Shown: one piece after another, positions 20,779-63,938 of the stretch
How positions within the stretch are numbered: the stretch's first letter is position 1
Layout of the letters: each line of letters starts with the position of its first letter
Virus record (IMG/VR): IMGVR_UViG_3300042549_005931
Coordinates: 205,134-269,133 of that record
Length of the DNA stretch: 64,000 bases
Reading direction: 5' to 3' (one strand)
Notes under the pieces: model-generated
Seen by the model: only the letters and a program-made list of their open reading frames with translations
Told to the model about the DNA's origin: nothing
Database searches by the model: none
Position numbers and translations under genes: made by a program

Positions 20779-20781
20779 ACT

Positions 20782-23696: not shown

Positions 23697-23697
23697 A

Positions 23698-24951: not shown

Positions 24952-25062
24952 GTAATGTTTTTTTTATAATGTAGGTAAAAAAATTCATTTAATAAACCTA
25001 ATGATATTTTTTTTAATAAAAATATTGTAGTATATTTGGTCGTTAAACTAAACAATAAAGGT

Positions 25063-28985: not shown

Positions 28986-29753
28986 TTACGCACCCACCGC
29001 TTTACTGAATCCATTAGGACAAGTTTTAGTACATACCAAAGATGCAACAACCGGTGCAACTGCCGCTCCGATTGCAATACCAACTCCCGCAGGTGTTGCC
29101 CATAAAGCTGCCGAATCTAAACTGTAGTAAATACAATTTGATATTACATTTTTTAATAGTTGAGAATCAACACTTCCACCAACACCGGGTATTTCTAAAA
29201 ATGCGTTCGCCACTATTGAACCCATTGCGGTTGCTACCGTTGATTTGACAGCAATATCGGCAGTATAAAGAACCGGTGTTGCCATTAACGACAATGTGGT
29301 TGAAGTTGCAGCTCCCGCAGGTTGTGCGGGTGTGAATGCTGCAACACAACCCATAGAAATTGCCGCAGTTATTCCAATTGTACAAGCATTTGCATCTGCC
29401 CATTTATATGCTGACACCGCACCCGCTGCAACTATTTCAACGCCTGCCACAATTTGTTGTTCAGCTTGTTTGGATAATTGAATAAATTCGCTTTGAGTTA
29501 CATCAAATCCCACCTTTGCAAATTCCTCAGTACTACTTGCAATGGTACAAGCCACGCTTTCTACTCTATGCGCACTATCGGTGGCAAATGTTGCTGAATA
29601 ATTGTATGCATCTACTACACCACCTATTGCAACGTTTATACCATCTCCTATTGGTTTAATAACTGCATCATTAATTGGTTGAATTACGTTATCATTAATT
29701 GTATTTCCCAAATCTACAAATGCGTTTTCAATTGCTTTTCCTGCTCCGCCCAT
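28986..29753 (-). CDS. Ala/Gly-rich hypothetical membrane or virion protein
   Basis: 255-aa ORF. Confidence 0.65.
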   Translation of the reverse strand: MGGAGKAIENAFVDLGNTINDNVIQPINDAVIKPIGDGINVAIGGVVDAYNYSATFATDSAHRVESVACTIASSTEEFAKVGFDVTQSEFIQLSKQAEQQIVAGVEIVAAGAVSAYKWADANACTIGITAAISMGCVAAFTPAQPAGAATSTTLSLMATPVLYTADIAVKSTVATAMGSIVANAFLEIPGVGGSVDSQLLKNVISNCIYYSLDSAALWATPAGVGIAIGAAVAPVVASLVCTKTCPNGFSKAVGA

Positions 29754-48643: not shown

Positions 48644-48834
48644 ATATTATTTTTTTTTGATGTCACAAAGATATACGGTTAATTTTTTCCCTCCAAACAA
48701 ATTGGTAAAAAAAATATTCGATTTTCTAAAAAAAAATTATTCGTGGAGGGGAAATATAATATACACAATTATTATATAATGTTCTATTGAGATGTATTGG
48801 ACGTTTATTAACTTTTTAAAGGTTCCTAATTTTT

Positions 48835-49035
48835 TTAAAATTTTCCGGAAATTTTTTTTTCCGATATGGGGGTATATTGGATATTACCGGATTTTTTCCG
48901 GAAAAATTTTCATCGAGGTATTGTCCCCCCTATATAGACCCCCCAAAAAACACTATATAAGGGGGGATACGGGGAGGGGGGTCCCCCCCACATAGGGTGT
49001 AGGGGGTATGTCACCCCGGTAACGTTCCCCCACAG
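48835..49035. other. G/C-homopolymer palindromic element at the strand switch (candidate terminus/pac/origin)
   Basis: TTTTCCGGAAA palindromes; CCCCCCTATATAG/CTATATAAGGGGGG inverted repeat; G-tracts. Confidence 0.55.
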
Positions 49036-49139
49036 TTTAGGGCGTCCTATTCTTCAGACTCTGTAAAAAAATATTACCTTACCTATTGTATATTAAATTG
49101 TAATCAGTTATATTTGTGTGTACCAAATGTAATAATGAA

Positions 49140-49247
49140 ATGAGAAATCAAAAAAAGAGAGATATCTCTCACGACCTTTCCCTCGATGTTATCGGTGTAA
49201 CTATCTTGGGTATGATTGTATGTATGTTCTTATCCTTAATCCTTTAA
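49140..49247 (+). CDS. 35-aa TM peptide
   Basis: MRNQKKRDISHDLSLDVIGVTILGMIVCMFLSLIL*. Confidence 0.55.
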   Translation: MRNQKKRDISHDLSLDVIGVTILGMIVCMFLSLIL

Positions 49248-49251
49248 TGTT

Positions 49252-49440
49252 ATGATGAATAGTTTAAAAAAATCTTTGTTGTTTGGTGGGGTAATCATAT
49301 CCTTTATTGGAATTTTATATCACGTTATCCAAATGATATCAACGAATGAGTTTGTTCATTTTGTATGTTTCTTTTTATGGATGGTTATTAGTGGTGGTCT
49401 TGTCCTATGGTTTGGTCACGAAGAAAATAAGTATTCTTAG
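49252..49440 (+). CDS. small 2-TM protein
   Basis: Two hydrophobic segments. Confidence 0.65.
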   Translation: MMNSLKKSLLFGGVIISFIGILYHVIQMISTNEFVHFVCFFLWMVISGGLVLWFGHEENKYS

Positions 49441-49480
49441 TTCGATTTTTTGTGTTTAATTTTTGTTGTTAGCGATTTTT

Positions 49481-49515
49481 AAAAATCCCTCGGTCTTATA
49501 GGTCGGGGGATTTTT
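49481..49515 (+). terminator. intrinsic terminator (near-copy at 51049-51081)
   Basis: AAAAATCCCTCG-GTCTTATAGGT-CGGGGGATTTTT. Confidence 0.75.
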
Positions 49516-49928
49516 GTTTAAGGAGAATTCTCTACAAGGTTGTAAAGGTGAAAAACTTACCGGGACAATATACCCCGGTAACATATTTTCAGGAACCTGT
49601 TGGTGAGGTCATCGGAACCTTCCGATAGTGTAACGGGAACCTTCCGTAAATTACTCAACCTGGTAATGTTTATCACCCGGACGACCGGTTAATAATTTCT
49701 CAAAAAAAATGTAACCTGGTAATGTTTTCGTGAAGAGAAAAAGTTTTTTCTGTTTTCATTTTTCAACCTGGTAATGTTTTTAAACAAAAGGGGACGTCTG
49801 GTTTTTTTCTTATTTAGAATGAATATAAATTTCATGGGGGTATTGTGTATTCAAGATAAAATCGTTATATTTGTTCACGGTTTTAAAGTAAACCTCAACA
49901 TCGGAAATGGTTCCGAGTTGTCACTCTA

Positions 49929-50237
49929 ATGTTTAATGTTATGGTCTATACCAAAGAAATTATCCAAGAGAAGTTGTCATCAGACATTCGTTGGATTGAG
50001 AGAGGTGTTCTTGTTTTGTTCGGTCGTCAAACCGAGGATGAGAAATCTTCACAAGTTACCAAGTGGGAAAATGGTCGTGGGTTCAATAGTTCAGATAGTC
50101 GTTATCTGACTTATGTTTCAAAGTACCTAATGGGTGGTCGTCATCTATCGGGTAGACATCTTGAAAAGGTGTCCTTGAAGTTACCAAAGTATTGGAAACA
50201 GATTCAAGAAGAAATTCAATTAAAGGGGGGTAGTTAA
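49929..50237 (+). CDS. early phage protein (RQTEDE...NGRGFN motif)
   Basis: 102-aa ORF; no Ala. Confidence 0.75.
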   Translation: MFNVMVYTKEIIQEKLSSDIRWIERGVLVLFGRQTEDEKSSQVTKWENGRGFNSSDSRYLTYVSKYLMGGRHLSGRHLEKVSLKLPKYWKQIQEEIQLKGGS

Positions 50238-50711
50238 CCCCTCTTTTTTTGTGTCTGAAGTGAAAACTTTACCGGGATGATAACTTATATGGTTTAAGGA
50301 ATTATCGTGTCTTAAATCAAAGATTCATCCTGGTAAAGTTTGTCTGGTTCTCATCTGGTTTTTTTTCTGTGTGTTTGGTAATGTATCCTGGTAAACTTTT
50401 GTTTATTTTCCGGTCCGGATGTAACCTTACATCTATTGGTAATACAACCTGGTAAAGTTTATGGGACGAGAAAAAAAATATCATAATATTCTTGTTTTAT
50501 ATACCGGTTTGCCCTACCTTTGTATTGTACCAAATGAGATAATGAAATGAAATAGTCGAAACACAAACTGACAAATAAAAAATAAAAGAAGGAGATGAGG
50601 TTGTTAAAGTTTACCGGGTTGAAAAAGCTTCACCGGTCAGGAACCCTCATAACTTTACCAGGATAAATCCGTCTAAGAAGAAAACAATCACACATTAAAT
50701 TTATAAAACGT

Positions 50712-51023
50712 ATGTATATTACCTTAACTAATTCAAAGTCAAAAAGAAAAACTATTATCAATTGGGGACAAGTTCATTCTTGTTATGAGTTGTTGGATAG
50801 AGAAACGAGAAGTAGAGTAACTAAGATTAACTTTAGTAAAGATAGTTACATCATTGTATCGGAGAAGTTGGAGGACATCCACAAACTATTAACGAAATTA
50901 AACTTTGGTTTATCCCAAGATGTTGAGTGGGATAGTGAACCGAATTTCGATGAGGTTATCGAAGATGAGTATAACACGAACCGTAGAGGAAATTACCGGG
51001 AACGTGATTACAATAGATTTTAG
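50712..51023 (+). CDS. early hypothetical protein (possible FlbD-like small beta domain)
   Basis: YITLT...IIN...TKINF...YIIVSE; no Ala. Confidence 0.6.
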   Translation: MYITLTNSKSKRKTIINWGQVHSCYELLDRETRSRVTKINFSKDSYIIVSEKLEDIHKLLTKLNFGLSQDVEWDSEPNFDEVIEDEYNTNRRGNYRERDYNRF

Positions 51024-51255
51024 ATTGTCAAAAGAGTAGTGTAGATTAAAAACCCTCAATCTTATAGGTTGGGGGTTTTTTGTCGCCTTTAGAAAAAAGG
51101 TGTATTACACTATGGGGGTATTGTATTACACATAAGGGTCGTATTACGTATCCCGGTAAAATAAGGTACCAGGTCCTGACGGTCATGGTCTTGAAAATAA
51201 ATTTATTATGGAGTGTTGTATATTAAGAGAATAGTGTTATATTTGTGAGAACAAA

Positions 51256-51585
51256 ATGATAAATGATATGAGAACTTTTTCAAGAACTTACTACACAGAG
51301 AAACTGAACATTACGATTAGAATAAAAAGAGATGAATTATGTTCGATGGGTTGTCGATTGACAATAAAAGATAGAATGAAAAGAGATTATTGGGGTATGG
51401 ATAGAATTGTTTATTCACAATTTTACAACGATAAGAAGATGTTTACAAAATATCGGAGACAAATGATTGAAACAAAAGTACCGGGAAAGGTGGTTAATGA
51501 AATCATTGACGATATTAAGATGAACCTTAGGTTTGAAAAAGTTGTGGTGTATCAACCAATCGAAACAAAAATGTTTTGGGATTAA
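51256..51585 (+). CDS. early hypothetical protein
   Basis: 109-aa ORF; no Ala. Confidence 0.7.
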   Translation: MINDMRTFSRTYYTEKLNITIRIKRDELCSMGCRLTIKDRMKRDYWGMDRIVYSQFYNDKKMFTKYRRQMIETKVPGKVVNEIIDDIKMNLRFEKVVVYQPIETKMFWD

Positions 51586-51741
51586 TTACCGGGATTTTAT
51601 CCCGTATGAGGTTATCCCGGTAAATTAATGAACCGGGTCCTGACCCGGTCATGGTTGTTATTTAGAATCATTATAAATTTCATTGGGGTATTGTATATTA
51701 AATTAAAAGAGTTATATTTGTATCAATTAAATGATAATGAT

Positions 51742-52551
51742 ATGAAACTAAATGACAAATCCTTAATTAATGTATTGGACAGTAAAGGGTTCAAAGAACA
51801 CCATTTATCGTGGACACAAAAAAATGTTGAGTATTTTTTTACTCACTATGATAAGTTCATGGAAAAATATGGTGATGATAATATTTTTGAGAATTTTTCT
51901 TGTAAAGAGTATTTTTATTCACAAAAAGTTACAAGAAGATTAATTTTTTCAAAAAAGTCTTTGAGTAATTTGGATAACTACCAAGTACCAAAAGAAATAA
52001 GAGTGGAAGTATTAAGAACATTACCTAATCGAGTGGACTTGATACAATTAAATAATGATGAAGTAGTAAAGTATGTAAAAACCGATAAAATGGTTTGTGT
52101 TACTTTTAATATCGAAGATAACCATACTAATGAAATCAAAACGTTTTTCTTTTCAATCAATTTAGAAACGGGTTATGTTTCGTATGATAATTACGATTAT
52201 CAAACTAATAGAGAGATTGAGTTTAATGAAATGAAAGAAAAGTATTACAACAAGTTTATGGTTGTGGTTACTTATTTGGAATTAACCCCCGTTACTTATT
52301 CAATCATTGAGGGTCAAAGAAGTTACGGAACAAAGAAAGAAGATAAGGTAAAGAACGAAACAAATAAACGTTTCATTATGGTAAAAACTAATTGGAACGT
52401 GGAAACAATTAGTCTATTCGATATTCATGTTCGAGGTCATTGGAGATTACAACCTCACGGAGTAGGTCGTTCACAATACAAGTACATCTACATTCAACCT
52501 TTTGAAAAAGGTATTACAAGAAGATTATCACAAAGAGAGTTGGTTTCGTAA
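51742..52551 (+). CDS. early protein with C-terminal VRGHWR motif
   Basis: Restarted at MKLNDK; 269 aa; no Ala. Confidence 0.75.
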   Translation: MKLNDKSLINVLDSKGFKEHHLSWTQKNVEYFFTHYDKFMEKYGDDNIFENFSCKEYFYSQKVTRRLIFSKKSLSNLDNYQVPKEIRVEVLRTLPNRVDLIQLNNDEVVKYVKTDKMVCVTFNIEDNHTNEIKTFFFSINLETGYVSYDNYDYQTNREIEFNEMKEKYYNKFMVVVTYLELTPVTYSIIEGQRSYGTKKEDKVKNETNKRFIMVKTNWNVETISLFDIHVRGHWRLQPHGVGRSQYKYIYIQPFEKGITRRLSQRELVS

Positions 52552-52736
52552 CCAACTTTTTTTTTGTCCTGAGATGGAACAATTTACCGGGATGTTCTAA
52601 AAGTATTACGTCCCGGTAAACTAATTACCTGAGACTCATCTCAAGTTGGTCAAAAAAAAATTAAATTATTTTTTCATATTGTGTTGTATATTAATTTATT
52701 ATGACTTATATTTGTTCACACAAAACAAATAATGAA

Positions 52737-52940
52737 ATGGAAAAAGTTAATGTAGTCCAAACAAGGTACAAGAATCTCACTAATGGTATGAGAGGTACGT
52801 TCAAATTATCCGATGGTACACAAACCAAATTCGAGGTATTCGACAATGGGGAAGTGAAACAAACGGGTACAACCGAAGCTAATCTGTCGGTAACATTCCC
52901 ACACTTAATTGAGTTAGTTCACTTTTTCACCAACCAATAA
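52737..52940 (+). CDS. early hypothetical protein
   Basis: Restarted at MEKVNV. Confidence 0.65.
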   Translation: MEKVNVVQTRYKNLTNGMRGTFKLSDGTQTKFEVFDNGEVKQTGTTEANLSVTFPHLIELVHFFTNQ

Positions 52941-53033
52941 AAATGAAAAGTTTACCGGGGTGGTTAATAGAATTCATAGAATTCCTATTACTCTTATGTG
53001 TATTTATATCTTATTCAGTTAAACTTATCTATA

Positions 53034-53222
53034 ATGGAAAAGACACAACTAATCGGTAAGAGAATCCGAATCAATCACATGGACGACATGTTACCCGTAC
53101 CTGATGGGACAGAAGGGATAATTACCGGGATTGACGACATCGGACAAATACAAGTGAAATGGGATAATGGAAGTACCTTATCCGTAATAGATGATATTGA
53201 TGACTACGAAATCTTAAACTAA
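53034..53222 (+). CDS. DUF4314-like protein
   Basis: GTEGIITGIDDIGQIQVKWDNGSTL. Confidence 0.8.
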   Translation: MEKTQLIGKRIRINHMDDMLPVPDGTEGIITGIDDIGQIQVKWDNGSTLSVIDDIDDYEILN

Positions 53223-53395
53223 TGAACGAACAATTTGTAAAATACATAATGGATATGTTAGAAACTTATCCACAACATAGAAACGATATTCGAGATTTGT
53301 TCAGACTTTGTAAGGACGAAATTAGGGAGGGTGGTTCCCCACAACACGAAATGGACTTATGTCGTAATGACATTGAGGAGTTGGTGAAGGGTTAG
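53222..53395 (+). CDS. 57-aa early protein
   Basis: TAATG overlap; MNEQFVKYIM...ELVKG*. Confidence 0.65.
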   Translation: MNEQFVKYIMDMLETYPQHRNDIRDLFRLCKDEIREGGSPQHEMDLCRNDIEELVKG

Positions 53396-53558
53396 AAAGT
53401 TTACCGGGATAAAGTCTGTATTACTTGTCCCTATCGTATTACATCCTGGTAATATTTTTCCCATCTCCTCGATGAGTGGAGTAAAAAAAATATATCATAT
53501 AATACTTGTTAATATTATAATTGTTTTATAATTTTACTAAACAAAAAATGATATTATA

Positions 53559-54056
53559 ATGAAAAAAAATCAATTAAAAGGTATTTTTACTGAATTAAAT
53601 GAAACTATCACACGTAAGAGTGCATTTAATTCTTTTATTGAAACGGAGAACATTTCAACCGATGTTACTTTGGAAATGTCAAGAATTGGTCTCATTCGTA
53701 AAAATGCATATAAACAATTACAAGAATTAAAAACTGATTATATCAATCTGATTAACGACAAGAAGGTTAAAGAATTGTTTGAGAAGTTTGAGAAGTTAGA
53801 AACTGCAATTGTCCAACATAGAAGTATATTAGCGACAGAAGTTAAATTGGGTTTAATAAATCAAAAGAGAGGTAGAAGTGAAACAAGTTACGTAATTGCT
53901 CGAGCACCCTTCTATCACCCAAACAAAGTGAAATCAGAAATTTCTGTGTATTTAGGTAAGACCGAAATTTTAGGTAATGATTTGGTAAAGTTATCCAATG
54001 ACAATGAGTTTATGAAGAGAGCTGAATTAGAATTGGTTTCATCAATGTTGCGTTAA
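53559..54056 (+). CDS. hypothetical protein, compositional outlier
   Basis: 165 aa with 7 Ala, unlike its neighbours. Confidence 0.7.
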   Translation: MKKNQLKGIFTELNETITRKSAFNSFIETENISTDVTLEMSRIGLIRKNAYKQLQELKTDYINLINDKKVKELFEKFEKLETAIVQHRSILATEVKLGLINQKRGRSETSYVIARAPFYHPNKVKSEISVYLGKTEILGNDLVKLSNDNEFMKRAELELVSSMLR

Positions 54057-54271
54057 AGATATTGACAATAAAACTTTACCGGGACAACGTCCCAATATAG
54101 TTACATCCTGGTAAAGTATTTGGTGTCGTTACATCAGTCGGTTCTTCCTTATTTAGAATGATTATAAATTTCATTAAAGTATAAAAATATTTTAGGTTAT
54201 ATTAGTATAAGTCGTATTAAATGACGACCTTTGTTAAGTCGATAATGACACAGAACCTTAAAAGTTTTAAA

Positions 54272-54829
54272 ATGGAAACTTTAATGAATGAGAATGGTGT
54301 AATCACCAAAAATGATTTGGTCTTAATTACTAAGACACAAATGTTAGGTCTGTTTTTGGGAGTAACAAAACCCGAAATGATTAACTTGATAACGGAAACC
54401 AATGTAAAAACCAACAAAACGGGTAACCCCTATTACAAACAACTTGTGAAGAAGTCGAAGTGTAACTATTTGTTATGTTCGGATTATACTACAAGGGTAA
54501 ATAATAACCGAGTTAAAGAGGGTAAAGAAACGGATTTTGTTTCAGAAAAGTCAAGTGGTAAATTTCATATTTCCCCTTGTGTATTGATGGATGAAAAAAC
54601 ACAAACAAAACACTACCTAATGGTGGAGAGGTTTGTGGAGGTTAAACCAAAGGTTCAGTATTTTTTTAATGAAGAACCGATTGAGTTTGATATGTTCAAA
54701 CAATTCTTATCACCAATTAGTGAAAACAAATCACAAGGGTTGGATAGGAAAGTAATTGTAAATACTCCTTTGTTCGATTCGATTGTAGGATTCACTTTCA
54801 GAGGTCGTAAGTATAGTGTAATTGAGTAG
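54272..54829 (+). CDS. early hypothetical protein
   Basis: Restarted at METLMNE; no Ala. Confidence 0.72.
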   Translation: METLMNENGVITKNDLVLITKTQMLGLFLGVTKPEMINLITETNVKTNKTGNPYYKQLVKKSKCNYLLCSDYTTRVNNNRVKEGKETDFVSEKSSGKFHISPCVLMDEKTQTKHYLMVERFVEVKPKVQYFFNEEPIEFDMFKQFLSPISENKSQGLDRKVIVNTPLFDSIVGFTFRGRKYSVIE

Positions 54830-54856
54830 TTCGTTTTTTTCATAGTTTGGTGGTTA

Positions 54857-54888
54857 AAAGGGTAGGACAATGTTCTACCTTTTTTTTT
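54857..54888 (+). terminator. shared cassette terminator (near-copies at 56174, 57253, 60884)
   Basis: AAAAGGGTAGGACAATGTTCTACCTTTTTTTT. Confidence 0.8.
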
Positions 54889-55090
54889 GTCTGATGTTCT
54901 GAGATGGTAAAAGTTTACCGGGATAAGTTAAGTATTACACGGGGGACGAAGAAGACTGGAAAACTTTACCAGGATGGATTTGTCCCGGTAAATTTCCTAC
55001 CTGTCGTTACTGTGTCAGGATTTGTCAAAAAAAATTAAATCTTTTTTGGTATAAGTGTTGGAATTGTAATACCTATTTTGTAATTTAGAT

Positions 55091-55450
55091 ATGTCAAATA
55101 AAAACAATGATATGAATACGAAAACCGTTTACAATGTAATGAGAGGAATTGAACCTTTCACACAAAGAGAATTTGATGTTCACCAAACATTAAAAGTTCT
55201 AACCCACAACAAACTTATTTGGATAACGTGGGGAGTCAATCTTCGAAGTATCTGTGGACTTGAACGTAAGTGTCTTGTCTTCAAACCCAACGGACAATAT
55301 TTTAAAGACTTTGTCTGTGTAACTCTTGGATGGGATGATGTTTACCAGGTTCATTTTATGAACGACAAGTACAAAGTCGTTAAGTCAATTGAAGGTGTGT
55401 ACTTTGATATGTTGGTGGATGTGATTGACGGATACATTGAAACTCGATAA
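55091..55450 (+). CDS. early hypothetical protein
   Basis: 119-aa ORF; no Ala. Confidence 0.72.
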   Translation: MSNKNNDMNTKTVYNVMRGIEPFTQREFDVHQTLKVLTHNKLIWITWGVNLRSICGLERKCLVFKPNGQYFKDFVCVTLGWDDVYQVHFMNDKYKVVKSIEGVYFDMLVDVIDGYIETR

Positions 55451-55571
55451 TTTACCGGGAGGAGAAATCCTCCCGTTAACAAGAGCTACGGTACCAAACT
55501 TTACCGGGATAAAAATAAGTTTTGTAAAATGAAATTAATGTTATATCTTTGTAACCCAAACAAATGACACA

Positions 55572-56153
55572 ATGAATATTAGAGAAGAAAGAATTGACAA
55601 TTACATTTTGAGATTATTTTATGATGAGAGTCCGACGAATCCTCGAGAGGACTACAATCTTACCAGGATGGTGTGTTTCCACAAGAGATACGACTTGGGG
55701 GATAGTCACGACTACAAACACGATGACTACGATAGTTGGGATGAGATGGAGAAGAACATTACCAGGATGGAGAACCCTATTGTTATCAAACCCTTGTATA
55801 TGTACGAACATGGTGGAGTTACTATTAAGACAAGTCCGTTTGGTGATAGATGGGATAGTGGTCAAATTGGTTTTGTCTTTATCCGTAAGGATGATGTACG
55901 GAATGAATTCTCAATCAAGAGATGTGGTCAGAACATGGTGGAGAGATGTGATGTATTACTTGAAGGGGAGGTTGACGTGTATGACAAGTACCTACAAGGA
56001 CAAGTATATGGGTATGAGATAGGTAAAATAAATGAAGATGGTCAGGAAGAAGGTTTAGAAAGATGTGGAGATTATCTTGATGAAGACCAATGTGTTCACG
56101 ATGGAATGGTATCATTGAATTGGTTTAAAGAAAATGAGAAAGTATTGGTTTAG
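55572..56153 (+). CDS. early acidic protein (LYMYEHGG...RWDSGQIG motif)
   Basis: 193-aa ORF; no Ala. Confidence 0.75.
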   Translation: MNIREERIDNYILRLFYDESPTNPREDYNLTRMVCFHKRYDLGDSHDYKHDDYDSWDEMEKNITRMENPIVIKPLYMYEHGGVTIKTSPFGDRWDSGQIGFVFIRKDDVRNEFSIKRCGQNMVERCDVLLEGEVDVYDKYLQGQVYGYEIGKINEDGQEEGLERCGDYLDEDQCVHDGMVSLNWFKENEKVLV

Positions 56154-56398
56154 GTTTTCCTTATTATTGTTTAAAAGGGTAGGACGATGTTCTACCTTTT
56201 TTTTTGTATTACACTTGAGGAGTCTGAAGTCAGGACCTGAACCAAAAGTTTACCGGGATGAGATGTATTACCCCGGTAAAGTTATGAGTCGGAGAAAAAT
56301 TATTTGGTCTTCCAAAAAATAATTAAATTAATTTTTGACAAGTAGTAGGATATTAACTTACTATCAGTTATATTTGTGAACATTTAAACAATAATGAT

Positions 56399-56644
56399 AT
56401 GTCAGTACAACAAAAAGAAATGATTGAAAAGTGGGACAAGGTTTCACAAGATGTTTTGAAAGGTAGAACTATTGTAGAAGTTCGTTACCTTAACGATGAG
56501 GAAATGGAAATGATGGGTTGGTATAATAGACCAATTTGTTTTTTCTTGGACAATGGTGTTAGTTGTATCCTATCATCTGATGATGAGGGGAACGATGGTG
56601 GAGTTTTATTCTACGGAGAAAATGGAGTGTTACCAACCCTTTAA
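56399..56644 (+). CDS. early hypothetical protein
   Basis: 81-aa ORF; no Ala. Confidence 0.72.
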   Translation: MSVQQKEMIEKWDKVSQDVLKGRTIVEVRYLNDEEMEMMGWYNRPICFFLDNGVSCILSSDDEGNDGGVLFYGENGVLPTL

Positions 56645-56655
56645 ACAATAATGTT

Positions 56656-56871
56656 ATGTTAATTACAAGAACAAGTCAGATTTCAAGAACCGATTTTACA
56701 ATGGAGTTGGATATTACCTACGACCAATTGGATAGGATTAATAATCGTTACGAGACCAAAGAACTCATTCAGAACATTGTACCAAACTTGTCGAAGGAGG
56801 AACGGGAGTTTTTAATTACCGGGATAACCCCAAAAGAATGGAATGAATTGTTTAACCCAATTGATGTGTAA
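56656..56871 (+). CDS. early hypothetical protein
   Basis: 71-aa ORF; no Ala. Confidence 0.72.
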   Translation: MLITRTSQISRTDFTMELDITYDQLDRINNRYETKELIQNIVPNLSKEEREFLITGITPKEWNELFNPIDV

Positions 56872-56872
56872 A

Positions 56873-57013
56873 ATGGAAGTTAAAATCGAAGACCTTATCA
56901 AATTACTTGAAGAACAAGTTAGTAAGGGAGTAACCAAAGTACAACTTAATGGTACTTTAATGTCCGAAGAGGATGGTAACTTAATTATTTTGTCCACCGA
57001 AAAACAAATGTAA
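56873..57013 (+). CDS. 46-aa early protein
   Basis: MEVKIEDLIKLLEEQ...; fills the gap in the operon. Confidence 0.65.
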   Translation: MEVKIEDLIKLLEEQVSKGVTKVQLNGTLMSEEDGNLIILSTEKQM

Positions 57014-57014
57014 A

Positions 57015-57230
57015 ATGAAAGTAGTATCAGTCCGTATTACAGAACAACCAAAAGACTTGTTCGACCCACTACCAAGAGTATTCGTAACAACCGAAGATGG
57101 TGTGGAACATTTCCTTTACCAATATTACCCCGATGAGATTAGTTTCACGGAGAGTGAGTTGATGGGATTAACATTAGAAGAGTGTGGTAGATTATATACC
57201 GAGAAAGATATTAGATATTTGAGGTCGTAG
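57015..57230 (+). CDS. early hypothetical protein
   Basis: 71-aa ORF; no Ala. Confidence 0.72.
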   Translation: MKVVSVRITEQPKDLFDPLPRVFVTTEDGVEHFLYQYYPDEISFTESELMGLTLEECGRLYTEKDIRYLRS

Positions 57231-57540
57231 TGGTTTTTTTGTTTGTGGTTATAAAAGGGTGGGACAATGTTCCACCTTTTTTTATGGACTGAAGTCAGGA
57301 ATCTTCTGAGATGGAAAAGTTTACCGGGATGGTGGAGTGTATTACGTCCTGGTAATGTTTGTCTGGCGCAGCTCTGGTCCATCAGGTTATTTATCCCGGT
57401 AAACTTATGAGTCACAGAAAAATTCTTGGATGTTCCAAAAAAAATAATTGTTTTTTTTTCATATAACATTTGTAATTGTAATATTAATTGACTAATTTAG
57501 TGTTGTAGATAATGGTATCTACATTAACCCCTTTAATGTT

Positions 57541-57876
57541 ATGAGTACAATGGTAGTAAATCAAGAAGTCGAGTTTTCAATGGATGATATTGATAACGAG
57601 GTGTATTTTGAAATCACGGGTAAAATGGTTTTCAACGAGATTTTGGTTCAAGAAATTTTTGATGTGATTGTGGAATCGGATTGGTTCGTTCAAGGTAACA
57701 AGACCGAAGGTCTATTGTCAATCGGTCAGAGATTGAAAAATGGTATCGAGGTTAATCTCGATTGGAAGTCAATCACAATGGGTGAGGATTGGGATTCGGA
57801 TGAAACGGAAGAACACGAAAAGGATTTTATCCTATCGTGGGATGAGGATAATAAGATTGTCCTTACACCAAGGTAA
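57541..57876 (+). CDS. early acidic protein
   Basis: 111-aa ORF; no Ala. Confidence 0.72.
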   Translation: MSTMVVNQEVEFSMDDIDNEVYFEITGKMVFNEILVQEIFDVIVESDWFVQGNKTEGLLSIGQRLKNGIEVNLDWKSITMGEDWDSDETEEHEKDFILSWDEDNKIVLTPR

Positions 57877-58079
57877 TACGAAGGGAGAACGAAAGTTCTC
57901 CTTTTTTTTGTCCCTGATGGTAAAAGTTTACCGGGATACCCTGGTAAAGTTTTCTACCCGTCACTGTCGACAGGTGATAAAAATTAATTAATTTTTTTTG
58001 TTACAAGGTGTTGTTTATATCGAAAATTAAACTATCTTTGTGTGTGGATAATGGTGTCCACAATAATCCAATAAACAAA

Positions 58080-58988
58080 ATGGAAACACAACTCGTTTTA
58101 AATGACCGTATTACACAATTATTAGACCAAACCAACCTGAATTGGAAGGTGAAAGAATCACCTATCTATACTAAGGTAGATGACAATGAGATTTTAGTAT
58201 CAGATAAAAAAGTATTACTTCGTGAAGACACACACGAGATTTTAGGTTTACACTCTGATGGATATGTACCGTTCCAAAATTATGAGATGTTAGAATTACT
58301 TGATAAGGTTTCTCAACAAACGGGTTTACCAATTCATAGAGGTGGTTTGTTTGGTAACGGTAAGAAGGTGTATATCCAACTTCAATCACACGAGTTCAGA
58401 ATTCAGAATGTTGGTGGAGTTTGGGACACTATCTCAGGATATGTTACCGGGATAAACTCATTCGATGGTTCCACTTCATTATCATTTGGTCCTAGTACCA
58501 AAACAATCTCATGTCAAAATACTTTCTTTGGAGCTTATAAGGAAATGGGTACAAAGATTCGTCACACAAAAAACATGGGGGTAAAGATTGACGAGGTGTG
58601 TAGACGAATTGAAGGTGTGTTGGTAGAGGAGAGAAACAACTTCGAAAATATCAAGAAGATGTCTGAAAGTCCTTTTGAGATGAACACATTAGATTCTGTA
58701 ATACGAACTATGTTTGACCTTGACCGTAATGTGGATTTAAAAGATACTGATAAATTATCGGGGGTAACTCGTAATAAATTATCTCGATTCTATATCGACC
58801 TTAACGGTGAACTTCGTGAGAAGGGTAACAATGTTTGGGGATTGATGTCGGGTGTAACAAAATATACTACTCACTCTGTGATTAAGGGTGATAACTCCGA
58901 GAAAAAGATGTTTGGTAGTACGGGTAATCGTGAGAGAAAGATTTTCTCCGACCTTGTAAACTATACCAACCACTTGGAACTCGTTTAA
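58080..58988 (+). CDS. DUF932/DUF945-family protein
   Basis: LNWKV...LLREDT..ILG...YVPFQN...GKKVY...NSFDGS...TISCQNT; 1 Ala in 302 aa. Confidence 0.8.
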   Translation: METQLVLNDRITQLLDQTNLNWKVKESPIYTKVDDNEILVSDKKVLLREDTHEILGLHSDGYVPFQNYEMLELLDKVSQQTGLPIHRGGLFGNGKKVYIQLQSHEFRIQNVGGVWDTISGYVTGINSFDGSTSLSFGPSTKTISCQNTFFGAYKEMGTKIRHTKNMGVKIDEVCRRIEGVLVEERNNFENIKKMSESPFEMNTLDSVIRTMFDLDRNVDLKDTDKLSGVTRNKLSRFYIDLNGELREKGNNVWGLMSGVTKYTTHSVIKGDNSEKKMFGSTGNRERKIFSDLVNYTNHLELV

Positions 58989-58992
58989 GATT

Positions 58993-59160
58993 TGTTGTCG
59001 ATAGGTGAAAACCTAAATTAACTCACCGATGTCTTGGTGAGAGAAGAATAAGGATAAGTATTACAGGGTGTCCCTACCGACAATGTTGGACTTAAAATAT
59101 TCACCCCGTATTACCGAGTGTGGGAGGTTTTGTAAAATCATTAACCCACATCCTTATTAA
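58993..59160 (+). ncRNA. putative pseudoknotted RNA downstream of the DUF932 gene
   Basis: TTGTCG/CGACAA, TAGGT-GAAA-ACCTA, AATAAGGAT/ATCCTTATT, TGTGGG/CCCACA; terminator at 59168-59198. Confidence 0.5.
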
Positions 59161-59415
59161 AGACACTAAAACCCTCTACCCAACGGAGGGTTTTTTTATT
59201 GCCCTCAGGAACCTGAAGACAGGACCTGGGTGAAAAGTTTACCGGGATATCCTGGTAATGTTTCCACCATGCGCTGGAGCTGCGCTGTAATCGTCCCGGT
59301 AAAGTATTGGAGCTGCGCTGTACTGTGTTAATTAAAAAAATTATTTAACAAAGTAGTATGATATTAACTTAATAGTGTTATCTTTGTAAATCGTTTCACA
59401 TAAACAATAAATGAT

Positions 59416-59751
59416 ATGAAAAGTGGTAACATTGTGGATTTAAGTAACCTCGATACACGGGATTTAATCGAGGAGTTACAGAACAGGGGGTATATGACCG
59501 GTTTGTTATTTTGTAGGGAGGATGTAGACCTTCAACTTGAAAGTTTAAATGATGGGTATCGTGGTCTAAACCTTACCTTGACTGATGAGGAAAAGGACGA
59601 AATCCTTGAAGGAGACTTACCTATTGATTGGACTTGTGAAAGAATCAATGAGAGTATCTATGATGGTGTCTTTAATTTTTTCAGTGAGGAGATTAATAAG
59701 TGGGAGGAAAAAGATTTGGGTGAGAAGATGAGAAACGGATTTGGAAACTAA
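59416..59751 (+). CDS. early acidic protein
   Basis: 111-aa ORF; no Ala. Confidence 0.72.
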   Translation: MKSGNIVDLSNLDTRDLIEELQNRGYMTGLLFCREDVDLQLESLNDGYRGLNLTLTDEEKDEILEGDLPIDWTCERINESIYDGVFNFFSEEINKWEEKDLGEKMRNGFGN

Positions 59752-60031
59752 TAAATTACCAGGATATATGGAAACATTTCAATTTTACAAAGACGAAAAG
59801 ATGACGATTTGGTATCGTGGTAAGTTCGAGGTCGAAGCTAACTCGGAGGAGGAAGCTATCGAGATGGTTAAGGAACTTGAAAAGACAAATAAGTTAGATA
59901 ACTACGATGTTTATTGGGAAATTTTGGATGACACTATGGAAGGGTTAACGGTGGGAGATAATGGTGGTTATTCCACAGAAGAAATATACACAGGTAGTGG
60001 AGACATAATTTGGGCCAATGGAAAGGAATAG
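59741..60031 (+). CDS. early acidic protein
   Basis: FEVEANSEEEAIE motif. Confidence 0.72.
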   Translation: METNKLPGYMETFQFYKDEKMTIWYRGKFEVEANSEEEAIEMVKELEKTNKLDNYDVYWEILDDTMEGLTVGDNGGYSTEEIYTGSGDIIWANGKE

Positions 60032-60242
60032 TGTAATCAAGAAACTCAGGGACGGTGAACCATTGGAACTTTACCGGGATGGATTGTTCATTACTCTCCA
60101 ACTAAACAAACGACATAAAAGAATTTGTTGGGAACGATGGGTATCTGTTAACAAAACCTCTTGGATGAATTGGAATTTATTCTTATCTTTACGGGACGTA
60201 ATACAAATCTATAATGATTATGAAAAAAGAAAAACTGATTAA
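60018..60242 (+). CDS. early hypothetical protein
   Basis: Overlapping operon ORF. Confidence 0.65.
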   Translation: MERNSVIKKLRDGEPLELYRDGLFITLQLNKRHKRICWERWVSVNKTSWMNWNLFLSLRDVIQIYNDYEKRKTD

Positions 60243-60543
60243 GAAAATCCAACAGGTGTTGGATGACTTGGACACTCGTAGTATTAATGTACATGAGTTA
60301 GACACGGAATCATCGATTAACATTGGTGATTTGGCCAACGGTGATATAACGGAATGTGTAGAAACACTTCGTTACGATGATGTATCCACCATAGTTTACC
60401 ACAACGGTAACGAGATAGAGTGGAGTGATAAAGATTACCGGGACTTACCTCTCAATACATTAGAGGAAATCCTTGAAGCTTTACAATACTATAAAATAGG
60501 TTTTGACAAAACATTAGACGTAATACGAGATGAAAACTATTAA
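60220..60543 (+). CDS. early acidic protein
   Basis: Overlapping operon ORF, restarted at MKKEKL. Confidence 0.68.
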   Translation: MKKEKLIKKIQQVLDDLDTRSINVHELDTESSINIGDLANGDITECVETLRYDDVSTIVYHNGNEIEWSDKDYRDLPLNTLEEILEALQYYKIGFDKTLDVIRDENY

Positions 60544-60823
60544 AACGATTGACCAAATTATTTCAGAGAGTGTAGAAGAGCACGTACTAACTTGTATTGA
60601 CCGGGTTAATAAGGGATTTAAAGTTGTAGAGGTTGAGGTTCCATTAGAATATTCATCCAAAGTGTTTACCTTACTAAACGATGAGATTAGTTATGGTGTT
60701 AGAATGTATGGGTGGAAGTTCGGAGTTTTCTCACAGGGAGAGTTCGAAGGTAAGATGGCTCAAACTATTTTAAAAGAAAACAATAGAGTGTTTAAAAGAT
60801 ATTTTTTAAAATACACTTTATAA
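60530..60823 (+). CDS. early hypothetical protein
   Basis: Overlapping operon ORF. Confidence 0.68.
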   Translation: MKTIKTIDQIISESVEEHVLTCIDRVNKGFKVVEVEVPLEYSSKVFTLLNDEISYGVRMYGWKFGVFSQGEFEGKMAQTILKENNRVFKRYFLKYTL

Positions 60824-61090
60824 TTTGTAAGATGTTACTTATATTTTGATTACAAATTATTTGTGTTCATATTTTGTGTTTGGGAAAAGGGTTGGCAGAA
60901 ATGTCAACCTTTTTTTGTGCTCGTGTATTACCTGTGCACTGTACCTGCACAGCAGTGAAGTTTACCGGGACAACCTGGTAATGTATTACCTGCAGCAACT
61001 GCAGAGCCTTCAGGTAAAAAAAGTTATTAAATAATGTTTGTTATATTGAAAACTATTTTGTAATTTTAATCCATCAAATAAACAAATGAT

Positions 61091-61858
61091 ATGGAATTTA
61101 AAAACTTAACACAAACAAAAAAGGATTTAGGACTTAACTATTTAGGTTCGGTTAGTAAAACCACCAAACATATTAAGTCAATTGAGTACAACGAATTGGT
61201 TTACACTATCTACTTGTCACCTGCAGACAGTAGTGGGTATGAGGTGTGTCCATTACGAAACGACGAATGTACCGACCTTTGCCTTAATGAGTCCGGTATG
61301 AACCGAATGAGTATGAATGACGAATTGATTAATAGAAGTCGTATCAAAAAAACTAAATTGTTTTTTGAGAACCGTGAATACTTTGTCAAGTGGATGGTAT
61401 ACGAAATCGAATCCACCAAACTAAAAGCTGAAAAACTTGGTATGAGTTTTAGTGTACGTATCAATAATACTTCAGACATTAATCCTTTATCATTTTATCT
61501 TGAAGTTAACGGAAAAAAATTAAATGTATTGGATTTATTCCCCGATGTACAATTTTACGATTATACAAAAGTTCCCAACCGAATGAAGTTAATGATGTTA
61601 TATCCTAATTACGATTTGACATTTTCTTATGACGGTTATAATAAAGATACTTGTCTACAGATGTTAGAAAATAATGTTAGGGTGGCCGTTGTGTTTGATA
61701 AGTTACCGGGAGAATTATGGGGGTACAAAGTTATCGATGGTGACTTGTATGACATGAGATATCGAGATGAGAAAAATGTAATTGTCGGACTGAAGTTCAA
61801 ACGAGTTCGAAAGAAACTACATAAGGATTATAAGTTCGTAATACAAAACCCACAATGA
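61091..61858 (+). CDS. GP88-like protein (Cys-motif, radical-SAM-like)
   Basis: EVCP...CTDLCL...VRINNTSD...QFYDYTK...YDLTFS...IDGD...VGLKFK. Confidence 0.78.
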   Translation: MEFKNLTQTKKDLGLNYLGSVSKTTKHIKSIEYNELVYTIYLSPADSSGYEVCPLRNDECTDLCLNESGMNRMSMNDELINRSRIKKTKLFFENREYFVKWMVYEIESTKLKAEKLGMSFSVRINNTSDINPLSFYLEVNGKKLNVLDLFPDVQFYDYTKVPNRMKLMMLYPNYDLTFSYDGYNKDTCLQMLENNVRVAVVFDKLPGELWGYKVIDGDLYDMRYRDEKNVIVGLKFKRVRKKLHKDYKFVIQNPQ

Positions 61859-62108
61859 TGTGGGTTTTTTTATGCACTCAGGAATCTGAAGGCAGGACCT
61901 GGATGAAAAGTTTACCGGGATATCCTGGTAAAGTTCCATTTGGGAAACACAGCAGCGCAAAACCATCCCGGTAAAGTTTCCCTGGCAACAACAGCAGCGC
62001 TGACTTCAGAAAAAAAATTAAAATATTTTTTACCTATGTGTTGTGATTTAGTAAAAATGTATTATCTTTGTACAAGTAATAAGTCAAACAATTTAAACTT
62101 TTAATGTT

Positions 62109-62657
62109 ATGGGATTAGATATGTATCTATCGAAAAAGACCTATGTTAAACAATGGTCACACGACAAACCCGAAGAACAATTCGAGGTGTCTGTTAAACG
62201 AGGTGGTAAACCTTTCAAGAAAATCGAATCAAGTCGGGTTTCTTATGTTACGGAAGAATTGATGTATTGGAGAAAAGCCAATCAGATTCATGGATGGTTT
62301 GTACACAACACACAGGAAATTGTGGAGGAAGTCAAATACTATGTAACCAAAGAAGATTTGGATAACTTACTTGATGTTTGTAAACAAGTATTGGATGTTA
62401 TGAGTAAGTCCAAGATGAAGACAGTCCAAGTTCGTAGTGGTTGGAGTGGTGGTGAGGAAACTTATTCCGATGTTGAAACTTACGATTGTGAGGATGAGAT
62501 TAGAGAATTACTCCCACCAACAGAAGGATTCTTCTATGGTTCTTACGAGATTGATGAGTGGTATAAACAAGCCATCGAGGAAACTGTGGAGTTCTTGGAA
62601 AAAGAATTACCAAAGTCCGATGAACACGATGACTTCGAGTATTACGCGAGTTGGTAA
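62109..62657 (+). CDS. conserved phage protein (MGLDMY...YWRKANQIHGWF motif)
   Basis: 182-aa ORF with a recognisable phage motif. Confidence 0.75.
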   Translation: MGLDMYLSKKTYVKQWSHDKPEEQFEVSVKRGGKPFKKIESSRVSYVTEELMYWRKANQIHGWFVHNTQEIVEEVKYYVTKEDLDNLLDVCKQVLDVMSKSKMKTVQVRSGWSGGEETYSDVETYDCEDEIRELLPPTEGFFYGSYEIDEWYKQAIEETVEFLEKELPKSDEHDDFEYYASW

Positions 62658-62719
62658 TATAAAAAAATAATCGGGATATCGTTTGGAATAATGGTATCCC
62701 TTTTATAATTTTGTAAACG

Positions 62720-62968
62720 ATGAAAGATTTATTCAATAATTCAAGACCAGTTCAGATTGAAATCGGTGAATGGTGGTTCAACGGGAGATTCATCCAAAAA
62801 CAGGTGCATCCGTTGCTTAGTCCTTATGTATCCTTTAATGATAATGAGGATGGTTATATGGTTCAAACTCACACAACCTTTAAGGAAGCAACTAAGTATT
62901 GTTTGGATAATCCTTGTAATACCCCACAACACCAACCAAAAGATTTTATAAGTTCATTTAAAAACTAA
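62720..62968 (+). CDS. hypothetical protein
   Basis: 82-aa ORF; TAATTTTG upstream. Confidence 0.65.
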   Translation: MKDLFNNSRPVQIEIGEWWFNGRFIQKQVHPLLSPYVSFNDNEDGYMVQTHTTFKEATKYCLDNPCNTPQHQPKDFISSFKN

Positions 62969-62974
62969 TATCAT

Positions 62975-63682
62975 ATGCCCAATTGGTGTAGTAACTATAT
63001 TACGATTTCGGGAGAGGAATCTAATATGAAACCCTTATACGATTTTTTTCGTGAAGGTGAAGAAATAGTCGAAACGTATTACAAACAATTCAGAGAATTC
63101 CGTGAGAACTTTCCTGATGAGGACGCGTTTAACTCAATAGGTATGAAAGAGGTATTCGTTATGTCTACCCTTGTACCTGAGGATGAGGAATTTGAAAAGA
63201 TTAAAGAGAGTGGTCAATATCTGTTATCACCTTACACAGAATTTTGGGGTTGTAAGTGGGACATCCATATTCACGACGGACTAATCACTGAGTGTACTCC
63301 AACAAAGATTCAATTATCACCAATAACCGCTTGGTCACCACCTGAACCATTCTGTAAAAGATTGTCAAAGAAGTATGGTGTTGATGTGGAGATTAGTTTT
63401 TTCGAGGGTGGAGCTAACTTCGCTGGTCGTAGTCGTTTTTCAAACGGAAAAGAAATCGAGAGTGTAATGTATACCTATCGTGAAGGGATGTATTACTTGG
63501 AAACTGAAATTTTTTGGGGGGAGACCTATAGTGATTTAGAATGGATGTTCTGTGAAAATCCAAATATCACATTCGACGAAGTGTTAGGACAGATGTACCC
63601 TTTCGTTAAAGATGAGAATGATATAAAAGAATTAAACGAACTCTATCATAATTTTAAAGTAGATGAAACAACAGGAGAATAA
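62975..63682 (+). CDS. YubB/DUF1281-like ferredoxin-fold protein
   Basis: MPNWCSN...WGCKWD...TAWSPP...FFEGG..FAG. Confidence 0.78.
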   Translation: MPNWCSNYITISGEESNMKPLYDFFREGEEIVETYYKQFREFRENFPDEDAFNSIGMKEVFVMSTLVPEDEEFEKIKESGQYLLSPYTEFWGCKWDIHIHDGLITECTPTKIQLSPITAWSPPEPFCKRLSKKYGVDVEISFFEGGANFAGRSRFSNGKEIESVMYTYREGMYYLETEIFWGETYSDLEWMFCENPNITFDEVLGQMYPFVKDENDIKELNELYHNFKVDETTGE

Positions 63683-63938
63683 ATTGAGAGTAAAGTATAG
63701 TAACTTTCAAACCAATATGAATTTCAACGAGTGGGCACAAACCTTTAAGGTGTCCACTCTTGTCCCTGAACAATTTGATAGATGGGACAGCAAGTTAGAT
63801 AAGTGTAATGAGAGTGAAAAACGAATGATGATTACTTCCATGTATGAGAACGATATCACCATCCCAATCAGTACAAGAATTTTAAGTAGTATAAAACAAT
63901 TAATAAATAAAGAAAGATGTCAAGAGAAAACAGATTAA
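63663..63938 (+). CDS. hypothetical protein
   Basis: Overlapping ORF. Confidence 0.6.
   Translation: MKQQENKLRVKYSNFQTNMNFNEWAQTFKVSTLVPEQFDRWDSKLDKCNESEKRMMITSMYENDITIPISTRILSSIKQLINKERCQEKTD

Follow-up and report, generated by a model that had tools for sequence, protein, structure and literature searches.

Which pressure could have led a phage to remove the dinucleotide GpC, and with it the amino acid alanine, from a whole set of early genes? A 10.5-kb block of this kind lies in a large lake phage, and it was examined here in a window of 64,000 nucleotides (positions 205,134 to 269,133 of IMG/VR record IMGVR_UViG_3300042549_005931). All coordinates refer to this window, and 83 kb of the 269-kb genome were read in total. 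The initial annotation had described the depletion from the sequence alone. This observation is confirmed, and the effect is stronger than initially stated. Its interpretation, an evasion of host or phage factors acting on DNA, is only partly supported. What is supported is that the purge is real, reflects strong selection on the nucleic-acid sequence rather than on protein, lies in early genes and cost the proteins their alanine. Relatives show that selection led to this state more than once, which suggests an as yet undescribed factor recognising GpC early in infection.

Extent of the GpC depletion

The three counts of the initial annotation are exact, with 5 GpC in 49081-53520, 1 in 54057-57360 and 2 in 57380-59260, while the stretches it skipped hold 8 GpC (gene 53559-54056) and 3 GpC (57366-57371). 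Per kb, the observed/expected ratio (O/E) of GpC is 0.00-0.10 from 49 to 59 kb, except for 0.24 in the kb holding that gene, compared to 0.4-1.6 elsewhere and 0.53 for the whole window, while CpG stays near 1. In the zone 48,657-59,260, the GpC O/E is 0.07 and the next-lowest dinucleotide is at 0.75. The depletion is milder on both sides, as initially stated. Our set of 24 ORFs with 2,542 codons contains 2 Ala, no NGC codon (AGT 40, TGT 36, GGT/A/G 154) and 1 codon-junction GpC against 65 expected. When the same proteins were recoded with the codon usage of the rest of the window, which already avoids GpC, 46 +/- 6 GpC were expected (minimum 28 in 500 trials) and 3 are observed. Hence, this is a dinucleotide effect and not only an amino-acid effect.

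Across the 83 kb read, almost every GpC not needed for Ala is already gone, but only the early block has given up Ala as well. Two conditions had been named beforehand that would have refuted the observation, an equally low GpC throughout the genome and equally Ala-free homologs in unrelated phages. Neither holds, as GpC is not equally low genome-wide and homologs in outgroup phages have 4.5-11% Ala.

Organisation of the early block

The features of the block and its surroundings are as follows.

48644-49115 (no strand): conserved non-coding leader between the divergent minus-strand and early plus-strand gene blocks, with TTCCGGAA repeats, a C6-TATATAG / CTATATA-G6 inverted repeat and a G6-N-C6 palindrome; 1 GpC against 13 expected. 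It is conserved in L004, L043 and L087 (L numbers denote related phages compared here), has no Rfam match, and its fold energy is no better than that of shuffled sequences.
49075-49117 (+): first copy of the early promoter (TTGTATATTAA, about 12 nt, GTTATATTTGT), whose -7 box fits the Bacteroidota TAnnTTTG type. Further copies have their -7 boxes at 49865, 51237, 51712, 52706, 55541, 56368, 59378 and 62062; all are on the plus strand, 10-55 nt upstream of ORF starts, and the extended motif occurs nowhere else in the window.
49116-59194 (+): GpC-free immediate-early block, about 24 small ORFs in several predicted transcription units.
49929-50237 (+): early ORF, 102 aa, 0 Ala (phrog_21015, no function assigned).
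50222-50246 (+): predicted intrinsic terminator with a GpC-free stem; others at 54856-54884, 56173-56201 and 57880-57905. In total, 29 terminator-like sites were found against 9.7 expected.
50712-51023 (+): early ORF, 103 aa, 0 Ala; clade homologs have 0-1.7% Ala, outgroups 1.8-8.1%.
51628-52551 (+): early ORF, 0 Ala, lineage-specific; the true start is probably near 51740, because a promoter copy lies at 51712.
52998-53222 (+): DUF4314 protein (E = 7e-18), 0 Ala.
53559-54056 (+): the exception, a 165-aa gene with 7 Ala and 8 GpC. It is an insertion specific to this lineage; its paralog normally sits downstream of the block in relatives, and this copy lacks the early-promoter motif.
54221-54829 (+): early ORF, 202 aa, 0 Ala; all 18 clade homologs have 0 Ala, outgroups 7.1-8.7%. 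The AlphaFold model is confident (pLDDT 85) and has no PDB match.
55572-56153 (+): early ORF, 193 aa, 0 Ala (phrog_6186); the AlphaFold model has pLDDT 83 and no PDB match.
58008-58988 (+): DUF932 protein (PF06067; 78.8 bits against a curated cut-off of 23, E = 6.9e-22) with 1 Ala (residue 176), the last gene of the GpC-free block.
59168-59194 (+): predicted intrinsic terminator that ends the block; the first GpC follows at 59201.
59271-59320 (no strand): GpC island of two GGAGCTGCGCTGTA boxes between the terminator and the next promoter (59378). Similar boxes lie at 61952-62002 and an island at 60895-61010; the CAGCGCAAA core is shared with L004 and L043.
59416-63938 (+): adjoining plus-strand block with intermediate avoidance (Ala 1.4%, junction GpC O/E 0.13), including GP88 (61091-61858) and a DUF1281_C protein (62975-63682); we take it to be delayed-early.

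The anatomy is that of an early module, with nine or more copies of one promoter, GpC-free terminators and repeated intergenic cassettes. A Shine-Dalgarno-like motif precedes only 2 of 80 genes.

The strength of avoidance is graded from the early block to the adjoining block to the rest (junction O/E 0.015, 0.13 and 0.36; Ala 0.08%, 1.4% and 4.2%). In contrast, GATC is absent uniformly over the 83 kb, and CTAG and CATG are low.

Alanine and GpC in related phages

To evaluate whether the lack of alanine reflects ancestry, we compared the early proteins with their homologs. Seven early families are Ala-free or nearly so across a clade of large (jumbo) phages but have 1.8-8.7% Ala in outgroups; for homologous early proteins overall, the outgroup range is 2.5-11%. 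Outgroup DUF932 proteins have 13-23 Ala with a locus GpC O/E near 1.0-1.2, while clade members have 0-10 Ala with O/E 0.2-0.57. Flavobacterium phage 11b has an O/E of 1.47. On the tree, an Ala-free DUF932 protein arose at least twice, with conserved Ala columns replaced by Val, Gly or Ser, differently in each lineage, which points to selection and not to deamination.

The trait is labile. The closest relatives L085, L087 and L092 (87-90% amino-acid identity) have a junction GpC O/E of 0.93 and an NGC use of 0.29-0.42, yet only 2.4-3.6% Ala, and one DUF932 gene has 26 GpC but only 2 Ala, an Ala-poor relic after relaxation. In L085-type phages the early block is relaxed while other genes still avoid GpC (junction O/E 0.48, NGC:NGT 44:234). 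A DNA-cutting agent could not produce that pattern, because early-gene DNA is still present late in infection; however, it could also come from modular recombination, as the non-early genes of these phages have no orthologs in the window to compare. Summed over 7 lineages, GpC density is 14.5 per kb in terminator-to-promoter spacers against 2.7 per kb in the rest of the early blocks.

Nature of the selective agent

We regard it as shown by the analysis that 49.1-59.2 kb is the immediate-early module of a 269-kb freshwater jumbo phage, probably of a Bacteroidota host, which appears to be read by host RNA polymerase from the repeated TAnnTTTG-type promoters. Likewise, we regard it as shown that selection removed GpC from essentially every transcribed position, i.e. 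Ala codons, NGC codons, codon junctions, untranslated regions and terminator stems, and that the trait is shared by a clade, reached the zero-alanine state at least twice and has been relaxed in other lineages. What acts on GpC is inferred. As avoidance appears to follow gene class rather than DNA as such, and as dense GpC islands survive between transcription units, we tentatively favor an agent acting on early transcripts, or on template DNA while it is being transcribed, a possibility the initial annotation did not consider. Such a factor would cleave, modify or sense RNA at GpC from the first minutes of infection and could be a host defence or a phage-delivered host shut-off enzyme. Each GpC in an early message would lower the chance that the first proteins, probably anti-defence proteins, are made in time, while later genes would be exposed less, or could not afford to lose alanine, and so would shed only their synonymous GpC. 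There is precedent in the ADP-ribosyltransferase CmdT, an anti-phage enzyme that modifies mRNA at GA (PMC11618068). On the other hand, no enzyme or sensor specific for GpC in RNA is known in Bacteroidota or their phages, and none was found in the 83 kb examined, including Pfam, PHROG and NCBIfam scans of the early proteins. GpC is its own reverse complement, so that sequence alone cannot separate selection on RNA from selection on DNA, and the transcript boundaries are predictions. In this window, the spacers and the probably untranscribed leader are themselves GpC-poor, which fits a DNA-level agent or read-through transcription. Late structural genes use 7-20% Ala, so the agent must be weak late in infection or the cost of losing Ala prohibitive. 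It remains possible, although less likely than not, that hosts of these lake phages, or the phages themselves, carry an undescribed factor recognising the bare dinucleotide in early mRNA or in DNA being transcribed. This would be a bacterial counterpart of the CpG and UpA sensing found in animals, with a pressure strong enough that phages repeatedly rebuilt a set of proteins without alanine.

Of the three alternatives of the initial annotation, evasion of a host nuclease, nickase or DNA sensor that reads GpC-containing sites on the incoming genome, in analogy to the first-step transfer of T5, is not supported as stated and appears unlikely, although it is the strongest rival. The phage clearly uses site avoidance, the block is early and encodes proteins typical of plasmid leading regions (DUF932, DUF4314, DUF1281_C), and a trait that switches on and off between relatives is typical of arms races over defence. 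However, all 16 NGCN contexts are purged, with AGCT and TGCA among the few survivors, so no single site is being avoided. Moreover, avoidance is graded, unlike that of GATC, which itself differs between lineages sharing the GpC purge, and islands of up to about 40 GpC per kb as well as the inserted gene with 8 GpC are tolerated inside early blocks, the dense islands in those of relatives. There is also no sign that the block is a physical genome end, as it is internal in the 269-kb and 340-kb contigs, the contig has no terminal repeat, and contig breaks nearby fall on tandem repeats. A second alternative, that the phage modifies its own GpC and the mark hinders host RNA polymerase or attracts modification-dependent restriction, remains possible but improbable. 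It fits the gradient by expression time and the tolerance of GpC in spacers predicted to be untranscribed, and the GCGC boxes upstream of later promoters could act as modification-sensitive switches. However, no DNA methyltransferase, dpdA (7-deazaguanine DNA transglycosylase) or base-modification gene was found in the 83 kb examined, which leave out about 186 kb of the genome; the methyltransferase domains present are TylF and FkbM sugar O-methyltransferase types within a glycosyltransferase cluster. Natural phage DNA modifications are also not known to block host transcription.

Self-protection from a phage-encoded DNA nuclease cutting at GpC likewise remains possible but is very unlikely. 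The genome encodes a Serratia-type non-specific endonuclease (27474-28103, E = 4e-35) and an HNH protein, and a phage-borne agent would explain why the trait follows phage lineage across different restriction-site avoidance profiles. However, late genes keep hundreds of Ala-coding GpC, so that the genome as a whole is not protected, and GpC islands are tolerated. That nuclease family prefers G- or C-tracts, which are enriched here (GG and CC O/E 1.3-1.7). Equally doubtful is a mutation bias by deamination of cytosine in GpC, through a deaminase or methylated GpC, in heavily transcribed early DNA. ApC and GpT are somewhat raised in the zone (1.21 and 1.12 against about 1.0), as are Val and Thr in early proteins (+1.6 and +0.9 points), but CpC rises as much as ApC, and the rest of the genome shows no GpT or ApC excess. 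Conserved Ala positions were replaced by Gly and Ser, which need transversions, as often as by Val. In addition, zero Ala in proteins predicted to fold confidently requires selection to outweigh protein constraint, and the boundaries are sharp and coincide with a terminator. A shortage of or attack on alanyl-tRNA early in infection, with the other GpC loss being the genome-wide habit, would be in agreement with the absence of tRNA-Ala among the 16 phage tRNA genes seen. It is largely refuted by the recoding result, as non-Ala GpC is far rarer in early genes than this habit predicts; furthermore, intergenic DNA and terminator stems are purged too, and relaxed relatives regain synonymous GpC first.

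We found no report of this pattern. Restriction-site avoidance, as in the first-step-transfer region of T5 and in GATC-free phages such as Staphylococcus phage K, also removes motifs by selection as a passive counter-defence, with early-exposed DNA the most affected. Here, a dinucleotide is removed in every context at the price of an amino acid, avoidance is graded rather than all-or-none, and islands are tolerated between transcription units. In the depletion of CpG against the ZAP sensor and of UpA/UpU against RNase L in viruses of eukaryotes, and in the case of CmdT, a two-base motif in RNA serves as the mark of non-self or as an enzyme's target, and avoidance is quantitative and tied to transcripts. 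The depletion described here is near-total and confined to one temporal gene class, and no phage has been reported to purge a dinucleotide in response to CmdT-like enzymes. Vertebrate-type CpG decay through cytosine methylation and deamination likewise depletes one self-complementary dinucleotide genome-wide to about half of expectation, with islands that escape, but its replacement pattern is not the one seen here, where the depletion crosses strong protein constraint. The Moraphages, aquatic jumbo phages of Flavobacteriia, were described without mention of GpC, alanine or GC content (PMC12619734). The resemblance to them rests on shared traits only, namely a freshwater genome in the 200-307 kb range, a Bacteroidota host signal, several glycosyltransferases, and ClpB-like and HSP20 heat-shock genes.

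Genomic setting and the early module

The window forms the last 64 kb of a 269,133-bp metagenomic contig (IMG/VR UViG_3300042549_005931, the same record as JGI Ga0454392_0000008), with a GC content of 32.7%. A nucleotide search of the GpC-poor block against 50,697 phage records found nothing, protein searches found only remote relatives, and no record in the phage collection is close. No terminal repeat of the contig was found. Besides a tRNA array, an endolysin and a ParB-like protein, the following features were identified in the window:

8088-8470 (+), a full-length GOLLD RNA (RF02032, 280 bits), a large non-coding RNA known from lake samples, beside the tRNA array
10336-10737, a true tmRNA (RF00023, 87 bits)
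17675-26136, a cluster of glycosyltransferases, TylF and FkbM-type methyltransferases and an IMPDH/GMP-reductase-like enzyme; one glycosyltransferase is 49% identical to those of Xanthomonas and Stenotrophomonas jumbo phages
27474-28103 (-), a Serratia-type non-specific DNA/RNA endonuclease (PF01223, E = 4e-35)

A further 19 kb upstream holds ClpB-like AAA+ chaperone and HSP20 genes (locus L095, 15602-18157, about 189-191.5 kb of the contig), which match the heat-shock gene content described for the recently reported aquatic moraphages (PMC12619734). The traits of the phage resemble those of this group.

Three features point to a Bacteroidota host and to transcription of the block by the host polymerase. 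A Shine-Dalgarno-like motif precedes only 2 of 80 genes, promoter-like boxes of the TAnnTTTG type are located 7-23 nt before several genes, and one extended promoter (TTGTATATTAA, about 12 nt, GTTATATTTGT) recurs nine or more times on the plus strand between 49.1 and 62.1 kb.

The left edge of the zone is a conserved 470-bp non-coding leader between divergent gene blocks (48644-49115), with TTCCGGAA repeats, a C6-TATATAG / CTATATA-G6 inverted repeat and a G6-N-C6 palindrome. It is conserved in relatives at 53-90% protein identity and could be an origin, a packaging site or a regulatory hub, while neither an Rfam match nor an unusual fold energy was observed. The right edge is a predicted intrinsic terminator at 59168-59194, and the first GpC follows at 59201. 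The intergenic regions repeat one cassette, consisting in this order of a terminator, an inverted pair TTTACCGGGAT / ATCCTGGTAAA with its arms 4 to about 60 nt apart, an A-tract and the promoter; the pair recurs in intergenic regions between 49.6 and 62.0 kb. One arm of the pair always has G where the other has T, as expected for a G-U pair, which suggests a hairpin in a plus-strand RNA; these elements could be RNA processing or stabilising sites.

Scans against Pfam, PHROG and NCBIfam gave the early proteins only domain-of-unknown-function (DUF) and unknown-function PHROG labels. DUF932, DUF4314, GP88 and DUF1281_C recall the leading regions of conjugative plasmids. Two Ala-free proteins give confident AlphaFold models (pLDDT 83 and 85), which had no PDB neighbour and matched only uncharacterised viral proteins. 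Judging from these predictions, they are real folded proteins, and ordinary folds can be encoded without alanine.

Loss of GpC and of alanine

The initial annotation had reported 5 GpC in 49081-53520, 1 in 54057-57360 and 2 in 57380-59260; all three counts are exact, and the observation is confirmed. GpC observed/expected (O/E) is 0.00-0.10 per kb from 49 to 59 kb, with the one exception of 0.24 in the kb that holds gene 53559-54056. The whole window is at 0.53, and CpG stays near 1. Within the zone GpC stands at 0.07 and the next-lowest dinucleotide at 0.75. By codon phase, 24 ORFs (2,542 codons) contain 2 Ala codons, no NGC codon and one junction GpC against 65 expected. Recoding the same proteins with the codon usage of the rest of the window predicts 46 +/- 6 GpC, whereas 3 are seen. 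Untranslated regions and the stems of five intrinsic terminators are also GpC-free. Hence, the effect lies in the nucleic acid, in all three frames, and alanine is collateral. Early genes use C-ending codons more than the rest of the genome when the preceding base is not G (37% against 24%), which makes the total absence of NGC codons more striking and suggests codon usage tuned to the host.

Gene 53559-54056 was at first taken for a conserved exception that argued for gene-specific pressure, but it proved to be a lineage-specific insertion of a paralog that normally lies outside the zone.

In the rest of the genome, GpC per gene is nearly equal to the number of Ala codons everywhere, for example 73 GpC for 72 Ala, 60 for 56 and 36 for 34. 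Junction GpC is 75 against 200 expected, and the codon ratios agree.

Use of NGC and NGT codons in the rest of the genome (NGC count, NGT count)
AGC / AGT: 14, 226
TGC / TGT: 7, 121
GGC / GGT: 25, 485
CGC / CGT: 4, 89

Almost all GpC that costs nothing to remove has thus been removed throughout the genome, as judged from the 83 kb of it that were examined. Late-looking proteins keep 4-20% Ala, the plus-strand block to the right of the zone has 1.4%, and the zone has 0.08%. Two proteins, encoded at 28986-29753 (-) of the window and at 10001-11071 of L095, have 18% and 20% alanine in a genome that otherwise shuns GpC, and are likely abundant structural proteins; no family match was found for the first.

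Comparison with related phages

The DUF932 protein has more than 1,900 database homologs, of which the top 120 all belong to this phage group. A scan of bacterial and archaeal genomes with the DUF932 alignment returned nothing usable. Eighty IMG/VR loci and several JGI and ENA contigs were compared. Outgroup phages (31-44% identity, similar GC content) have 13-23 Ala in DUF932 and a locus GpC O/E of 1.0-1.2, and Flavobacterium phage 11b has 1.47. A supported clade of large phages has a locus O/E of 0.2-0.57, and within this clade the early families are Ala-free or nearly so in almost all lineages, against 1.8-8.7% Ala in outgroups. The relatives L004 (a 340-kb contig) and L043 show the same sharp GpC-free block in the same gene order.

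On the DUF932 tree the Ala-free state needs at least two origins. Three Ala columns that are conserved in outgroups and in the partly depleted lineages are replaced by Val, Gly or Ser, differently in each purged lineage. Gly and Ser require transversions, which is not what cytosine deamination produces, in agreement with selection rather than history or mutation.

The trait is labile. The relative L091 (92% identical) is purged, while L085, L086, L087, L088 and L092 (87-90% identical, collinear and also GATC-free) have normal GpC in the early block, with a junction O/E of 0.93 and an NGC codon use of 0.29-0.42, equal to that of other C-ending codons. Their Ala content is still only 2.4-3.6%, and one DUF932 gene has 26 GpC and 2 Ala. 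When the pressure lifts, synonymous GpC therefore returns first and alanine lags as a relic, which is a useful marker for tracing past conflicts. L037 and L046, two further relatives, are relaxed too. As sister lineages at 87-90% identity either keep the purge or have lost it, the responsible gene in phage or host should be findable by comparative genomics.

Possible nature of the selective agent

The purge itself and its origin by selection are shown by the sequence comparisons, whereas the agent and the level at which it acts are inferred. The interpretation in the initial annotation, which offered evasion of a host sensor or nuclease reading GpC before anti-defence proteins are made, a GpC modification by the phage, or protection from a phage-encoded GpC nuclease, is only partly supported.

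Four findings argue against a DNA-cutting enzyme acting on entering DNA. GATC, a restriction-type avoidance, is uniformly zero over 83 kb (0 against about 175 expected in 64 kb, and 0 in a further 19 kb; it is also absent from L085-L092), and CTAG is rare. GATC avoidance differs between lineages, as L004 has 23 GATC but is poor in ACGT, whereas the GpC purge is shared across lineages and graded by gene class. Dense GpC islands are located inside early blocks, between a predicted terminator and the next promoter, with 14.5 GpC per kb in such spacers against 2.7 per kb elsewhere in the early blocks of seven lineages according to a crude classification. A recently inserted gene with 8 GpC is tolerated in the zone. 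In L085-type phages the early block is relaxed while neighbouring non-early genes still avoid GpC (junction O/E 0.48), which is possible only if the target is something transient, such as a transcript, because early-gene DNA persists in every genome copy. However, this contrast could also reflect module exchange, since no shared backbone genes were available for comparison. GpC is self-complementary, so that the strand cannot be read from the sequence, the transcript ends are predictions, and the leader and spacers of this window are themselves GpC-poor.

The islands are compact box arrays with GCGC cores upstream of a subset of early-type promoters, including two promoters beyond the zone, and are probably operator sites for a regulator:

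window 59271-59320, 60895-61010 and 61952-62002
L020 (a relative) 3290-3560, a 3 x 72-bp array
L043 3540-3650
L004 7410-7441

A CAGCGCAAA core is shared by boxes in the window, L004 and L043. Tandem copies break metagenomic assemblies at this point. Many contigs end just upstream of DUF932, but we rejected this as evidence of a genome end, because the shared break point lies in a 72-bp tandem repeat.

We tentatively rank an RNA-level or transcription-coupled agent specific for GpC first. It could be a host defence or a phage shut-off factor, and has a precedent in CmdT, which modifies GA in mRNA. DNA-level evasion on entry appears less likely but comes next, followed by self-modification at GpC, which is doubtful. 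A phage DNA nuclease and mutation bias are both considered improbable, and limitation of tRNA-Ala is the most remote of these possibilities. If the agent acts on RNA, it would add a new class to bacterial immunity or to phage host shut-off. As far as our literature searches show, the removal of a dinucleotide so thorough that about 25 proteins are built from 19 amino acids is unreported for any phage; it provides a sequence-only signature of a very strong selective agent that is still unidentified.

The gene content was also inspected for a possible agent. A PHROG 'DNA methyltransferase' hit at 17675-20029 turned out to be a TylF-type sugar O-methyltransferase fused to glycosyltransferase-like domains and was rejected as a GpC methylase. 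The further 19 kb of the genome contained chaperones and structural-looking genes but no candidate agent. Close relatives carry three lineage-specific genes in or beside the early block (L085 1593-1898; L087 17702-19054; L088 5410-7866), namely a protein like the C-terminal domain of the RNA polymerase alpha subunit, an IS605 OrfB/TnpB element, and an 818-aa insertion after DUF932.
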